This document shows positions 1-8,094 of a DNA stretch of 8,094 nucleotides, in pieces. The translations under genes and the position numbers were made by a program. Numbering within the stretch: the stretch's first letter is position 1; every line of letters begins with the position of its first letter. The notes beneath the pieces are model-generated. The model was given only the letters and a program-made list of their open reading frames with translations. It was not told where the DNA came from and did no database searches. Source of the stretch: Amoeboaphelidium protococcarum X5 (taxonomy: Eukaryota; Fungi; Aphelidiomycota); NCBI GenBank assembly GCA_023515725.1, contig JALDTO010000296.1, positions 1-8,094 of the forward strand. Reading direction: 5' to 3'.

Positions 1-170
1 CTTCGTCGTTCTCGGGAGAGACGCGACGAGAGCTTGGCAGCAGACACCGAGAGGGAGTTGAACCCAGCCGCTCTTTGTGGCTCTATAGTTCTAAAGTTGC
101 AAAACAAAAAATGTTTACGAATTAACTTTTGGTTGAGCTACTTAAGCCGTACAAGTCCGCTTACATACAA
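1..170 (+). ncRNA. Possible 3' portion of a structured RNA (RNase P RNA-like, tentative)
   Basis: GC-rich start with two GNRA-capped stems (loops 14-17 and 49-52), further stems at 93-129 and 131-148, and motifs loosely matching RNase P conserved regions in the right order. The 5' half would lie outside the window. Confidence 0.25.
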
Positions 171-246
171 AATATTACATCTCCTTTTAACATCACTCAC
201 TTATTCGAATTTAATTCAACACATTTGTAAAACCATCACATCTTCA

Positions 247-1773
247 TCAAAAGTTCTCCTTATGGAACTTAAACAGCGTTCCATTAGAAATGTCCGGCAT
301 CTTCTGCTTAGGATCAGACGGCGGCAGGGTGGACTTAGGACGCTTGACAGAATTCTTTTTACATGCCACAGCCAATTCCTTAGCAATAGCGTTAGGACCA
401 CACAAGAATACGCCCACATCTTCACCGGCGTGCTATTGAGCCTTCTCCTTGAAAATTCTGTTCCAATTTGGCTTACCAGAGAACTGATTGTATCTCTCAT
501 GCTTGATCTTCTTCAAGTCCAGCTCACCAGTTACGTACATGTTAATTTCCAAATGGTTCTGCATTTCGCTCATTGTGCACAGATCATCGAACAGATCCTT
601 GAATGAGTTGAACTCTTGCAGATCGCGACAGATCCAGTAAAAGTACAACTTCTTGGACACTTGCTGCAAACCAATCTTGGCCTTCATACGGATACTAATA
701 GACTTAAGTATACTAATAAAAGGCGTAACTCCTATGCCCGCACCTACTAATACAACGGTATCATAATCAAAGACTTCTTCACTCGCAGAACCGTAAGGTC
801 CATCAACACGAAGCATTGGCGCCTGCAAATCCAAAGCGTTCTCTTCAGTAATAGTCACATTGCGAGCTGGTATGTCCTTACCACTCGTTCCTGTGGAATC
901 TGCGAATCCAAGACGCTGTCTCAGGCGGTAAGTCCAATCCATATCAGATCTGCATCTGATGTGGCAACTAAAATCGGAGTCTTCGGGAGCACTCGTGATC
1001 GTGAATGGATGATACTCAGATGGCGAAATATCAGGACAGTTGAGAAACAGATACTAACCGGCCTTATAGTGAAACTTCTTGGTCTTCTTGCTAGCCAGAG
1101 CCATCTTAAGAGATAGCACATCCTTACCGACCATTTTAGCCTCCACAATCTTTACATCCAATCTGGTGTGACGATACTGAATGTACTTCTCCAGACACAT
1201 GAAAGCCAGCGGAAACATTGAGTATGAAAAGAATAGACTGCCATGAATCCACAGCAGAGCATAGCAAGGAATCCACAAGTTGTGCAGCTTCAAAAATATC
1301 TTATAAGCATCAAATCTTCTACCAAAAACGGTAAAAATCTTTCTCTTAATAAGCGCAGTTGCATACATGATAAAGAACATACCGGTAATAAACTATCCAG
1401 TAATACCAGGCCTCGTAGCCAAAGCATTAACATACACCGGCACAGCAATTGTGGTGCGATAATATTCAAAGTCCAAGTAGTGACACGTGATATGTCCAAT
1501 AGCACAGAATGCGATAACATAGGCACTTCTGCGATGAATCTCCAGGTTCTCATCCAGCGGCAACACTTCATTCAGTGGAGTGGTGCGTAGAAAGGATAGC
1601 AAATTACGCATAACCGGAATCAAGATGAAGGATAGATTAAAATCGAGCATCTTACCGAATCCCTTAGCGAATACAAAATATGGTGCAGAATCAACACCGA
1701 CACTAATAAAGTATCCGTACAGGAACATCACAAGATTACACAGCGTATACAAAGTATTAAACCAGATGGACAC
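247..1773 (-). other. NADPH oxidase catalytic core (6 TM di-haem domain + FAD- and NADPH-binding dehydrogenase domain)
   Basis: B-loop RNLLSFLRTTPL. Haem His pairs HRRSAYVIAFCAIGH (14 apart) and HNLWIPCYALLWIHG (13 apart), matching NOX2 H101/H115 and H209/H222. Also AGQYLFLNCP, FAD motif HPFTITSAP, HIR..DWT, VDGPYG, LVGAGIGVTPF, YFYWICR, VGVFLCGP, FHKENF. Confidence 0.95.
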
Positions 1774-3735
1774 CTAATTCCACTCATAGTAATCAACCAT
1801 ACGTCCAATCAGTGGATATCGCTCAGACATGGGCGCCTTTACAGTATTAAGTGCGTGTGCAGAACCAGCCACATTCTCATCATCATCAAACTCGGCCGTG
1901 ATGATAGCTTTATTCGTACCATAGACACGATTAAGCAGTTTAGCCTCTGGATGCTTCTTGGCATAACGGAAGCCTAGTAGGCCGATGAAAGCGAAAGCAG
2001 CAACACCAACCACAGCAACTCCAATACCAGCTCCCACAGTGACGGCATCCTCCGTCACAATGATCAGACCCTTCTACTCCCGATTGGTGAAAGCATTATT
2101 ACGAGTGCTCATTATATAAAACTTGCCAGTATTATCCACTCTCACCAATCCAACATCATAATACGCAGGCGCTGCATTCAACACTTTACAATTGTTCTCA
2201 GCATTCTGGTCATTGGTGTTGATATCACAGCCAGTCTAGTTCAGGAAGGCCATACTGATGATAGCATTAACATCATTGGTGAAATGAGTAGGTGCCTACT
2301 GGTTAACAGGATTCAAGTTCAAAGGATAATTCTTGGCCCAGTTGGACATCAGCACCAGATTATTACGATCAGTACCATCTTTACCATTACCAGCATTACC
2401 TGCCTGGTTGGCATCAGATCCGACAAACTGAACGTGCAAATAATCACCACGAGATACATTTACCACCGTTGGGATGAAATCATACTCGACACTTGGATAA
2501 GTTTACTGGATGTTTCCTCTGCGACCGCGAACATTCAAATTGACAATTCTACAGTTAGGAGAGCGGAGTCCACAGCTCAGATTATTCGGTCTCTTCCTAA
2601 TAATAAACTTGTGACTTCTATCTTCAAAGGTGCGGCCAAACTGAGCGGTATTAATGGCCAATCTCAACGGACCGGAGACATTAGTACCATATCCGAGGAA
2701 ATCTGCAGTAGGATTAGTCTTGATGGGGGATGCGCCTGAATTAGATTTGGAATCCGTATTCCATCCGTCATAGTCGGCAGTACTGATGTTGTAGCGGATA
2801 CGAATCACACAGCTAGCACCATCCTTATGGACACCCTGAGGAACAACCCAGTTGAAGGTTGGCGGCTAAGATCCATAAGCATTACCATTATTGTTATTTC
2901 TGGTGACGGGACAAGCTGAACACAGAGGAGGTGGCTGGTTCCATGGCTCAACCTGAGTCCAAGTGCCTTTGTTGTAAGTGCAATCATACTGATTGTTGTA
3001 CTCTGGCATGGAACAGTTACCTTTACTCATCACATTCTGACTCTCGCTCTGATAGTACGGACACATGGATGGCGTGTTGGTACAAACAAACACATCTCTC
3101 CACGGAGATGGATGCCAGTAAGGATAATAGTCCCTCTCCTCAGGACACTCATAGCCATATCTCTCGCCATTACTACCTTGGCGTGTATATATAGCAGATT
3201 AGCCTTGCAGGTTCTAATCAGCCGTGAACAATCTCGTATTTCTCTGACGCAATGTGCACAGATTGTAATACTTGAAAGATTCGTGCTGACCAAAAGAGAG
3301 CAGATTAGGATTATTCTGGTCCAGTGGAATAGTCTATGTGGTGGTACCGTCTCGAATGTTATCAGACATTTCATTGTCATCGCACATGTACTAAATAATG
3401 ATCTGAGAGTTTAGCTTGGCATCTTATAAGCCGTGTTAATTGTACCATTCGATGGGAATCTCGGAGCCTTCATAAAACTGCATCACACCCTGTCCAGCAC
3501 CTTCATACCCAGGCTGGTACTGATTATTATCATCCAGACAATTGGGGATACACTTGTCACCCACCTGATAGCCAGCATTTCCATTGTTCTACGAATCGAA
3601 CAGGCGGTTATCATTGTTGACATTATTGCTCTGCTCATTCAACTTATTGTTTGAACCACGAGGATTGTTCATGTAACAATCGCCGCCAACTTTGCTGACC
3701 AACAGCAACAGGGACAGAGAAAGAAGAAGTTTCAT
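247..3735 (-). CDS. DD3-3-like ectodomain / NADPH oxidase (gp91phox/NoxA-type) fusion protein, ~1162 aa
   Basis: Six supplied minus-strand ORFs (2866-3093, 2503-2808, 1774-2058, 1393-1773, 1054-1380, 433-942) share one frame. I translated the gaps and found only TAA/TAG (12 TAG, 4 TAA) and no TGA. The start is ATG 3735 (MKLLLSLSLLLLVSKVGG, signal peptide), with an in-frame alternative ATG at 3744 and an upstream TGA at 3757-3759. It ends FKFHKENF-TGA (247-249), the canonical NOX C-terminus, followed by a second TGA at 244-246. Confidence 0.93.
1969..2037 (-). other. Extra transmembrane helix between the ectodomain and the NOX core
   Basis: Uncharged VGAGIGVAVVGVAAFAFIGLLGF followed by RYAKK (positive-inside rule), implying N-out/C-in orientation. 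Confidence 0.85.
2056..3681 (-). other. DD3-3-like extracellular domain (~540 aa) of the fusion protein
   Basis: Motifs I recognise from the Dictyostelium DD3-3 family, in order: YMNNPRGSNNKLNE, NRLFDSQNN, IEWYNQHG, QYMC, IRDGT, LFTADQNL, GYECPEERDYYPYWHPSPW, CVIRIRYNIST, LAINTAQFGRTFEDRSH, NLNVRGRRGNIQQTYPSVEYDFIP, MSTRNNAFTNREQKG. Confidence 0.85.
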
Positions 3736-4204: not shown

Positions 4205-5224
4205 ATGTCTTCGTAGATACCGACGCGTAAAAGGCGCAAGATTGACATTCAGATTGAGGAAGAATAACATTCTGCTGTGGTATAATCCAACTCGAAATCT
4301 ATCGTCATCAAAGATTAAAAGATTACCAATACTCAAGTCAGTGATGTAATGCTAATTAAGAAGAGTCCTCAGAAAATAGTCAGAGCATTGAATGACTTTG
4401 TACCACCCAGCGAGAAACAATGGCGAAACTTGTACGTGAAACTGAGAGACTGGCGGTTTAATTATCCTACATCTCCGTACACTGATTATATTGATCCCGC
4501 TAAGGAATAGTATCCATCCTAGCCGCCTGTTGATACTGTTGGATGTTCATCGCTGAATTTAGATAATGTCCCGGCCAATGTTAGACGATATCAGATACTG
4601 GTTAGCCTCTTACTAAGCAGTCAGACGCGAGATGAGTTGACAGCGCAGGCTATAGGTAATCTGCATCAGTTGTGTAATAAATAGATTGGTCTCAACATTT
4701 CAGATCTGTTAGCAAGCTCTGAAGACCAAGTTCATGAGGCGATCAAGATGGTTGGATTTCATAACGTGAAAACTAAAAATCTCATTCGATTATCGTCTAT
4801 TTTGGCTTCTGATTATGATAATGATATACCAGCTACGGCCGAGGATATGATGAAACTACCAGGTATAGGCCCCAAGATGGCTTATCTAGCAATGTCCCAT
4901 GCATGGAACAATTGTGTGGGTATCGGTGTTGACACTCACGTCCACAGGATCTCGGCGCGTTTTAAATGGAGTCCATATAAGTCTAGCAGTAGCAACATCA
5001 ATGGCGGTGAACTTGTACCAAAATTTGATGATCCTGAAGTGACGCGAGCGTGCCTGGAATCGTTCGTGCCTCAAGAGTTCTGGACTGAAATAAACACCGT
5101 GCTGGTTGGACATGGTCAAGTAGTGTGTCTTCCCAAAGCATCTATGCGCAAGTGTGATATTTGTATACTGTCTTCTGAATGTCCTTCATCAAAGTTATTG
5201 AATTCTAAAAAGATTAAAAAGTGA
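4205..5224 (+). CDS. NTH1: Endonuclease III homolog (HhH-GPD DNA glycosylase/AP lyase), 339 aa
   Basis: ATG 4205 is in frame with the supplied ORF 4748-5224 across 7 TAA/TAG codons, ending in TGA. Motifs: NLS-like RKRRK, PVDTVGC, RYQILVSLLLSSQTRDE, VGFHNVK, HhH LPGIGPKMA with catalytic Lys, GVDTHVHRIS with catalytic Asp, LVGHGQ and a four-Cys Fe-S cluster motif. Confidence 0.95.
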
Positions 5225-5337: not shown

Positions 5338-6345
5338 TCAAACGTTGATCGACATTACATTGTCGGTGGTCGCAAACTTGTTAACCACGGGAACATCACG
5401 ATCATTTCCCGCATCTTCCACAGTAATAATAGAAGAACAGACACCTTCAGCAGCAATACTTTTATTTTGATGTCCTTGAGCGTATGGCTAGGTGGAAGGA
5501 ACAAATTTGGACCTGTTCTGAATGTTACTGATCGCCTTCTTCATCTAGACGATAATCATTATGAAAGAGAACACTATGCAACATCCAATAGTTTTTATCA
5601 CGTATTCCATCGCTACAGACGGCGCCAATGATGATAGGCCAACAGTGAGGCCACCCAATAGAGACAGCGACACGGTATATCTATTATGCCGCGCTATAAC
5701 GATGTACGTTGCTGAATTGGGTGACTCTACTGCTTTTTACAGTTTCTTCAGGTACACAATGATGCTTACCAGGTACGTGAAGTCCACCGAAAACAAAAGA
5801 ATTCCATTTATAGAGCTGCATGCAGTCAAGATATCACTAAGATATTATGGCAAAGATGGTAAAATGAACAGAGCGACCTGAAGCATGCAACTCAAGATGC
5901 CCAATACAAAGCTCAATTGCGCCAGAAACAACACAACGCATGCGACTACGCGATTCTCGACAAACGCCTGACTGCGAAGGGTGATGTAGACAATATAAGA
6001 CAAGTTGACGCCAAACATTGACACATATGACAGGCACCGTAGAGTGATGAGATCTGCAGATGTGGCGGTAGTAATATCTATCGGAGGATTATAATTTTAG
6101 GCATCCAAGTACCAGTCATAGAGGAGACCATTACTGATAACAGCCAGTAATAGCGACAGATGCATCAAGATAATCAGCTTGTCAAATACGGTGCGGAAAA
6201 TTGAACGCCATGACTTGGTTGTTGTCGTTGCCGTTGTAGATAGGCACTAATCAGTTTACTAGAGATGATGGACGCGACAGAATCTCGCGAAATGCACCAC
6301 TATAGCCAGCGAAAATATAGTAGCTACACAGATTGTCCAGTACAT
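5338..6345 (-). CDS. Uncharacterised multi-pass membrane protein, ~335 aa, about 7 TM helices (GPCR-like topology)
   Basis: Absent from the supplied track. With TAR=Gln, the frame is open from ATG 6345 (MYWTICVATIFSLAIVVHF) to TGA 5338-5340, with about 8 TAA/TAG. Seven hydrophobic segments are followed by a polar C-terminal tail. The nearest upstream in-frame TGA is 6415-6417, so the exact start is somewhat uncertain. Confidence 0.8.
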
Positions 6346-6650
6346 TTTGCCGACAATAGAATAGATGTCCGAATTTCTGTCAGGTAATAAGGTACACTTA
6401 ACAAAATAGACATCTCAAATTTCCGCAAATCCAGAAATAGATCTGTCGCCATATTCCTAAAAATAGATAAGCCAATGTAAATCAATGCTTTTGATTGACT
6501 TGAGCATTCCAATCAGCCTACTATCAACAGCCTAGTGCTTGGTTCTACAATGAATTTTAATTAGCTTCATCGAGTATATATTTTATATTGATTGAAGGTT
6601 GAAACAATGCGCGCGTCATCACTTTGACTGCGATCGCGTGTTGAGTAAGT

Positions 6651-7065: not shown

Positions 7066-7296
7066 ATTATAATTACTATTGTTATTATTTTATTATTTGA
7101 TTGACTTCTATATCATTTTACAAAGACTTTATCCTACTTTATGGGTTCTCAGTTTAAAGCCGCGCTATTTGTCCTTCTCTTTCATTCTGCTTTGACGAGT
7201 AAAGTAAATTCCTTTTACTCTTATTCTGGTGTCTTTACCCATCATCATCAAACTAAAATATTTTAAAACTTGTGGAAGTATATATAATTTAAGAAT

Positions 7297-8094
7297 ATGA
7301 CTTCACTGTTAAAAGATTCTGAACTTTGCTCATTCTATCGTTTGAGTAATGTTAATGATGTTCAATATTGGTCTGAAGCAGTGCCTGAAGCTGATGCTGC
7401 AATTGTCCCAACTATTTCCAATGCTGCCATGCCGAGTCTAGATAACAATAACAATAGTAATAATAATAATAATAAGAATGAAGGTTTATAGCTAGTAATG
7501 GAGTCTGTAAGTGACTATAAAGAGTATACGTATGAGTAAATGTTCACAGAGTTGGTGGAGAGACTGGAGTTGGAGACTAGTAAGCAGGAGATTTCTCTGC
7601 GTGAACTTGTCAAGGATTGTTTCGATGAATTTGTGATGGCCAAAGGCTCTGTAGATTCAGTTTACGCTAATATTTTGAGTAAATAATAATAACAATAATA
7701 GTAGCAAGTAAAAGGGCGTCTAGTACAACCATAATCATAATCATCATCTATTAGGAGTGGTGAAAGTGAGCTGTCTCATGCGTTGCTGGATGTCAATTCT
7801 AGTGTCACCGCCACTTTGTAGTATATGAGTGGTATGTATAGTCCTATAATAGATCGCCGTCTCAAGGTGAGATCTCTCCGTCACAGTATTGGCACTCTAT
7901 CCAAGTACTCTTATCTATTCAATCTGCCCATTGTGATTTAAAGTTTTATTTAAAGTGGTTACAAATCTTCATCTTTATTCGGTAATGTTGAATTGCAGCG
8001 ATTGGAACTATTGATTAGTGATATCGCGAGAGGTGAGGAGTAAATTTCCGCTAATGAAGATGCATCATTGAAGTGTGTTTATAGTCAAGTCGGG
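7297..8094 (+). CDS. SEC5: Exocyst complex component Sec5/EXOC2, 5' part (runs off the window end)
   Basis: Frame open from ATG 7297 to the window end with no TGA. It contains LRELVKDCFDEFVMAKGSVDSVY (Sec5 LKxLVxxNFxxFVxxKxxID-like) and YSPIIDRRLKVRSLRHSIGTLSKYSYLFNLP. The N-terminus DSELCSFYRLS..W resembles fungal Sec5. Confidence 0.8.
7444..7473 (+). repeat. AAT/AAC-rich tract encoding poly-Asn (NNNNSNNNNN)
   Basis: AAC AAT AAC AAT AGT AAT AAT AAT AAT AAT in the Sec5 frame. Confidence 0.9.
7684..7707 (+). repeat. Poly-Gln (Q8) tract written in mixed TAA/TAG/CAA codons
   Basis: TAA TAA TAA CAA TAA TAG TAG CAA in the Sec5 frame. Confidence 0.9.

Follow-up and report, generated by a model that had tools for sequence, protein, structure and literature searches.

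Can an NADPH oxidase (NOX) and a DD3-3 protein be parts of one polypeptide, and what would such a protein do? These questions are raised by a stretch of 8,094 nucleotides (the window) on contig JALDTO010000296.1 of Amoeboaphelidium protococcarum X5, an alga-eating aphelid and parasite. On its minus strand, one long open reading frame (ORF) encodes a protein in which an earlier reading of the DNA letters (the sequence-only reading) had recognized a signal peptide, a Cys-containing DD3-3-like ectodomain, an extra transmembrane (TM) helix, a linker and a NOX core. This layout was borne out by hydropathy and by a structure model, which placed a TM helix at amino acids (aa) 564-594, then a linker of 60 aa and the six helices of the NOX core. 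By every sequence test the protein is a NOX and not a DUOX, and the fused oxidases to which it belongs are probably a separate, widespread and very old NOX class. The features of the gene are:

247..3735, minus strand: whole ORF, ATG 3735 to TGA 247, 1162 aa, table 6
3682..3735, minus strand: signal peptide, aa 1-18, predicted cleavage before Asp19; hydrophobic Leu run, V-x-G before the Asp
2590..3681, minus strand: DD3-3 N-domain, aa 19-382; beta-sandwich with large Cys-stapled insertions, weakly LPMO-like (LPMO, lytic polysaccharide monooxygenase)
3679-3681, 3433-3435 and 2611-2613, minus strand: N-domain residues Asp19, His101 and His375; invariant acidic motif at aa 196-203
2053..2550, minus strand: DD3-3 C-domain, aa 396-561; cupredoxin-derived, type-1 copper positions replaced (N458, S543, Q554)
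1954..2046, minus strand: extra TM helix (TM0), aa 564-594; hydropathy peak 2.49, helix in the model, hydrophobic in all members
1777..1953, minus strand: cytosolic linker, aa 595-653; low-confidence in the model, no EF-hand pattern
1168..1776, minus strand: NOX six-helix dihaem domain; haem H734, H748, H818, H831; O2-site H752, K691; T779-G780
781..1161, minus strand: FAD-binding domain; HPFT at aa 909-912, GPYG; Pfam PF08022, E 9e-12
250..780, minus strand: NADPH-binding domain; GAGIGVTP at aa 998-1005, CGP, C-terminal E-x-F; Pfam PF08030, E 1e-19

One reading frame and its two halves

The 1162 codons and the TGA lie in a single frame of table 6 that needs no intron and includes 16 in-frame TAR codons (12 TAG and 4 TAA). 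This code is supported because TAR and CAR were swapped between strains at 4 sites of the gene, because 28 of the 29 strain variants listed were silent under table 6, and because 7 of the 16 TAR codons stood at alignment columns where 45-56 of the 56 homologues have Gln. The uninterrupted frame with TAR read as Gln, as first proposed, thus held. The accompanying expectation that standard-code annotation would fragment the gene did not, since NCBI has a full-length model on the same contig (P0296; ATG 3744, 1165 aa, three more N-terminal codons, otherwise identical) and homologues from standard-code genomes are annotated whole. The protein was 99.7% identical to A. protococcarum MP228_007104. 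For searches, the ORF pieces between TAR codons were used separately, and a 99.7%-identical public protein (P0180) was used for alignment and folding.

We also considered whether two adjacent genes, or a misassembly, had been read through under the wrong code. The X5 assembly comprises 23.6 Mb in 346 contigs. A 5353-nt contig from an unrelated 2013 biofilm metagenome covered positions 150-3726 with 26 substitutions and 0 gaps, and in a second A. protococcarum assembly the gene, again intronless and of 1165 aa, lies beside the same neighbours on a contig of 2.2 Mb. Because both span the junction, misassembly is ruled out. A metatranscriptome of the organism contained short pieces from both halves of the ORF, and in run X6 (kind of data not stated) the ORF was covered at mostly similar depth up to about 40 nt past the stop codon, a pattern that fits RNA but is not proof of it. 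Although no recorded RNA contig of A. protococcarum bridges the whole junction, an artefact is hardly credible in the face of these assemblies and of more than 100 homologues of full length, many of which come from transcriptomes or from genomes with the standard code.

The C-terminal half contained the ferric reductase, FAD and NADPH triad with six TM helices. Pfam matched FAD_binding_8 and NAD_binding_6, and Ferric_reduct was weak on the ORF piece and above cut-off when read across the stop. The best PDB sequence matches were NOX5 (1e-54), NOX2 (2e-53) and DUOX1 (E 2.5e-37), whose folds the core also matched in structure comparison. All four haem histidines, spaced by 14 and 13 residues (H734/H748 and H818/H831), were present in 57/57 members. 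NOX are told apart from ferric reductases by H101, H119, T/S178 and G179 (Zhang et al., PMC3591440); the equivalent H734, H752, T779 and G780 were kept in all 57, with T or S at 178. H752 occupies the position of NOX2 H119 and K691 that of NOX2 R54, where every one of the 57 has a basic residue. No EF-hand pattern was seen in these members, and no EF Pfam domain on the fused proteins. Both the intact core with its haem and FAD/NADPH motifs and the implied contrast with DUOX were therefore confirmed. As judged from sequence and model, topology and residues were shown to suffice for transmembrane electron transfer, with the ectodomain on the O2-reducing side.

The linker varied from 32 to 230 aa across the family and was basic or acidic by lineage. 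In Gefionella okellyi (P0175), an SH3 domain lies within the linker between TM0 and the core of a fused member; an unrelated EF-less NOX (P0399) also has an SH3 domain. The only other NOX-like genes in the A. protococcarum genome were a near-duplicate pair of about 625 codons, L003 (G000:C235) and L004 (G000:C192). Both carry the NOX signature and lack EF-hands; their branch is very long and they fall clearly into no class.

The N-terminal half was homologous over its full length to proteins named DD3-3, at about 40-45% identity, and the DD3-3 assignment was thereby secured. DD3-3 has no model in the Pfam copy used; Pfam gave nothing relevant on the ectodomain pieces and 60 N-domain members, and PDB sequence-profile searches with four ectodomain alignments gave no match. 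A peroxidase-homology domain had no Pfam or PDB match, and the model was a beta-sandwich. Foldseek gave no hit with E < 0.001, its top rows all being cupredoxin or multicopper folds; a viral library gave nothing, and HHalign of the N-domain against a narrow AA10 set was null. One LPMO contig of bacterial origin, from a gut metagenome (L064), lay outside the analysis. The C-domain had a cupredoxin fold, in a register supported by profile alignment. Its type-1 copper ligands His/Cys/His/Met were replaced in A. protococcarum by Asn/Ser/Asn/Gln (N458, S543, Asn, Q554). No fused member had Cys at the type-1 Cys position. His and Cys were both kept in 8 unfused DD3-3 proteins (P0025, P0029, P0040, P0052, P0117, P0141, P0145 and P0282), which, from their sequences, are the best candidates for metal binding. 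Fused ectodomains also carried a diagnostic Cys-pair insert (aa 60-83). The N-terminal His1 of LPMOs was absent: Asp stood at +1 of the cleavage site in 140/143 family proteins, with a small residue at -1/-3.

Unfused DD3-3 proteins are cell-surface glycoproteins tied to recognition. The ascidian HrSMLP1 is a self-marker (PMC6916515), a sponge DD3-3-type gene is induced by microbial patterns, and knockout of Dictyostelium DD3-3 alters aggregation and cAMP signalling (PMC6208332). Partner domains of unfused members were FN3, WSC and TPR; further examples (P0238, P0256, P0041, P0176) had TPR (Planoprotostelium), WSC, DUF7495 or a long unannotated C-terminus, the last in a 1424-aa Picozoa protein. 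Contigs of giant-virus metagenome-assembled genomes (MAGs) encoded a signal peptide, DD3-3 and one TM helix without NOX, at 36-37% identity. Five viral-type copies formed one clade (100), including one on a viral-looking contig binned in a Bacteroidetes MAG (L007:3959-5824, L008:2386-4188, L009:1918-3702, L010:3914-5764 and L005:3822-5513).

Distribution and descent of the fused oxidases

A 110-aa ectodomain query returned 749 clusters at 50% identity, with a full NOX core in 9 of the best 150. After three further searches, at least 139 proteins had both halves, close variants and fragments counted. Fused members on the fungal side came from aphelids and from the chytrids Spizellomyces, Rhizophlyctis, Borealophlyctis, Phlyctochytrium, Gorgonomyces, Boothiomyces, Globomyces and Gonapodya; elsewhere they came from Ceratiomyxa, Gefionella, Nephroselmis, Cymbomonas, a pelagophyte, four diplonemids and many dinoflagellates, including coral symbionts. 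With its occurrence in chytrids, amoebae, algae, diplonemids and dinoflagellates, the fusion is not a novelty of one lineage. Animal, land-plant and dikaryan fusions were absent among the matches listed. Many fused homologues were complete ORFs from transcript assemblies, and in these relatives the fusion is therefore on one mRNA. Bacterial occurrence (2/185,579 genomes) was rejected: one copy groups with those of giant viruses, the other is fragmentary in a mixed-looking contig.

Descent was examined with a quick mixture-model tree of the core and a tree of the ectodomain, both unrooted and without DUOX, animal NOX5 and ferric reductases. In the core tree, 33 fused cores stood on one side of a branch (Shimodaira-Hasegawa-like approximate likelihood ratio test, SH-aLRT, 99), opposite RBOH, bacterial EF-hand NOX and EF-less NOX; they lay outside the EF-less clade (SH-aLRT 99) and so did not belong to NOX1-4, NoxA or NoxB. 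In the ectodomain tree, 30 fused sequences and two members ending at or just after TM0 grouped at 99 against the unfused ones, and the same subgroups were repeated (fungi with aphelids, dinoflagellates, diplonemids, chlorophytes, and Ceratiomyxa with Gefionella). Close cores seemingly devoid of an ectodomain start in the ectodomain tail, TM0 or linker, and those inspected were read as truncated models. The simplest reading of these trees would be a single early fusion with mostly vertical descent and many losses; because of the way they were built, transfer of the fused gene between lineages stays as the alternative. Contrary to the species tree, the A. protococcarum core grouped with Rhizophydiales (92) while that of A. 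occidentale fell outside, at a point where the ectodomain tree gave no resolution.

NOX surveys recognize eight eukaryotic classes and one ectodomain design (DUOX). The present class would add a further one on both sides of the eukaryote tree, and it bears on how NOX regulation began, because it lacks EF-hands and also falls outside the EF-less clade. Its sequences are public, under names such as hypothetical protein, Protein DD3-3 and FAD-binding FR-type protein, and the class seems unrecognized. In line with the sequence-only reading, which knew of no description, a search of the non-subscription literature found no paper with both DD3-3 and NADPH oxidase; the DD3-3 papers found concerned animals, Dictyostelium or unrelated uses only. 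Nor was the architecture among those listed in PMC3591440 or in the accessible part of the dataset of PMC9421330. An unclassified chytrid NOX of Massari 2022 was rejected as a member, being a different Spizellomyces protein (XP_016606104, not XP_016607795). For extracellular superoxide, the class offers named candidate genes in dinoflagellates (both coral symbionts and bloom-forming species), in diplonemids and in chytrids; SPPG_05133 of Spizellomyces punctatus is a tractable member. DD3-3, which is conserved, lies at the cell surface and is linked to self-recognition in ascidians, gains a first structural reading and a connection to redox chemistry.

The rest of the window contained:

4205-5224, plus strand: Endonuclease III/NTH1-like HhH-GPD glycosylase, head to head with the oxidase, about 470 nt between
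5338-6414, minus strand: ORF (335+ aa) with multiple hydrophobic stretches, which may encode a 7-TM receptor-like protein; the other strain's model has no recorded Pfam domain
7105-8094, plus strand: long frame rich in Asn and Gln, open at the end of the contig; its syntenic counterpart in the other assembly is, by position only, probably the Sec5 exocyst subunit

The NTH1 gene was dropped as a functional clue because neither A. occidentale nor Spizellomyces has the same gene neighbourhood.

What the ectodomain may do

We propose that the protein would work as a calcium-independent, seven-helix NADPH oxidase of a separate class. Cytosolic NADPH would supply electrons that pass by way of FAD and the two haems to O2 at the outer or lumenal face, beside the ectodomain, a path that is very probable from NOX knowledge and the conserved residues; by established NOX chemistry, superoxide or H2O2 would be made outside the cell or in a lumen. 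The ectodomain would be a binding module from two copper-protein-related folds that lost their canonical copper sites. By binding a surface, glycan or partner it would place the local superoxide/H2O2 output, and it could possibly switch the oxidase on through TM0 and the linker, replacing EF-hands or cytosolic activators. This coupling of binding to placement or gating is ranked first on three grounds: the loss of the canonical copper sites, the lack of the usual calcium regulator and the part that unfused relatives play in recognition at the cell surface. Taken whole, a fused NOX class from one early fusion in which ectodomain binding places or gates the output of reactive oxygen species (ROS) is a tentative reading, a little short of an even chance, and for the role of the ectodomain we rely on inference.

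Several points weigh against it. TM0 and the linker were poorly conserved, with no common gating motif visible in the family alignment, and the full-length model (predicted template modelling score, pTM, 0.61) did not fix the domain arrangement. Genome searches for p22phox and DUOXA were uninformative, their controls being silent too, and absence cannot be read from them. Ectodomain identity of 40-60% across eukaryotes, the conserved mature Asp1, and acidic and His residues that never vary are more suggestive of a metal-binding or catalytic site than of a domain for simple adhesion.

Those last features lead to the strongest rival, that the ectodomain is a metal-dependent catalyst fed by H2O2, superoxide or electrons from the oxidase, which we place not far behind but regard as less likely than not. 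At the same modest level of belief, a modified brace would be made up, on a sandwich resembling that of LPMOs, of the free amine and carboxylate of mature Asp1 together with His101 and possibly also His375 or the acidic motif. The protein, as a one-chain equivalent of an LPMO and its donor enzyme, might oxidize, cut or cross-link outside polymers, an outcome we rate no higher. VIA aligned model residue 3 (Asp1) with residue 1 of AA15 5msz and X325 6ibh over 130-146 residues, and an N-terminal Asp has been named as a possible chelator (PMC12537917). The near-constant Asp after the cleavage site, His101 (42/42 fusions), His375 (42/42 in fusions vs 40/54 in unfused members) and the descent of the second ectodomain half from a copper electron-transfer fold also count in its favour. 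Slightly more doubtful is a wider version, in which the NOX class is as old as the last eukaryotic common ancestor and DD3-3 is a new kind of N-terminal-aspartate metalloenzyme on an LPMO-like scaffold driven directly by its own NOX core; if true, a function as redox enzyme or ROS sensor would extend to the unfused DD3-3 proteins found in invertebrates, amoebae and giant viruses.

The peroxidase-homology domain of human DUOX is non-catalytic, and on that model the oxidase could be constitutive or regulated from the cytosol by a kinase or small GTPase, with the ectodomain only a module for tethering, oligomerization or trafficking. The lineage-specific basic or acidic linker and the SH3 domain in Gefionella point to such regulation from inside, and the loss of copper ligands agrees with it. 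However, the ectodomain is at least as conserved as the core (e.g. 44% vs 27% to dinoflagellate members), beyond what a passive tether needs, and we find this explanation improbable.

Metal reduction, suggested at first, is disfavoured by the lack of variation in the NOX signature. A role in Fe/Cu uptake as a metal reductase, with an ectodomain that captures metal or chelates like DOMON-fused ferric reductases, would suit the resemblance of both ectodomain folds to copper-handling proteins and the automatic label of ferric reductase on some members, and yeast Yno1 illustrates that family and activity can be uncoupled. Against this, H119 and T/S178-G179 do not vary and the nearest solved relatives are NOX5, NOX2 and DUOX1 (true ferric reductases were not in the tree), so that we hold it very unlikely. 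Wall attack, another early suggestion, may be a use in this parasite; as a general function it is at odds with the occurrence of the class in algae that photosynthesize and in free-living grazers.

The binding-coupled oxidase that we prefer can be set beside several known systems. LPMOs (AA10, AA15, X325) and cupredoxins (plastocyanin, azurin) resemble the two ectodomain halves in fold, but the DD3-3 class has Asp in place of His1, the LPMO link has no sequence support, and the type-1 ligands are replaced as described. Dictyostelium DD3-3, HrSMLP1 and invertebrate DD3-3-like proteins have the same ectodomain, mature Asp1 and motifs, whereas they end in FN3 and/or a single TM helix without an oxidase, and the fused ectodomains form their own clade. 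With NOX5, NOX2, fungal NoxA-B and RBOH, the fused core has all haem, O2-site, FAD and NADPH residues in common; it differs in its separate branch vs RBOH, bacterial EF-hand NOX and EF-less NOX, which have no ectodomain or TM0. DUOX had been named as the sole ectodomain design among NOX classes, which is correct but does not hold more widely: DOMON-fused ferric reductases of Naegleria and oomycetes likewise join a signal peptide and an N-terminal outside beta-sandwich to the ferric-reductase/FAD/NADPH triad, although they belong to the reductase group and DOMON is a proposed haem or sugar binder not related to DD3-3 (PMC3591440). DUOX1/2 resemble the fused oxidases in having a signal peptide, an ectodomain of about 550-600 aa, a seventh TM helix, a cytosolic linker and a NOX core. 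The proposed convergence with DUOX stood for the ectodomain, which consists of two beta-sandwiches and not a haem-peroxidase fold; for the core, the tree contained no DUOX or animal NOX5. The fused class further differs from DUOX in its lack of EF-hands, in its variable linker and in being found in protists and zoosporic fungi, whereas DUOX is found in animals.
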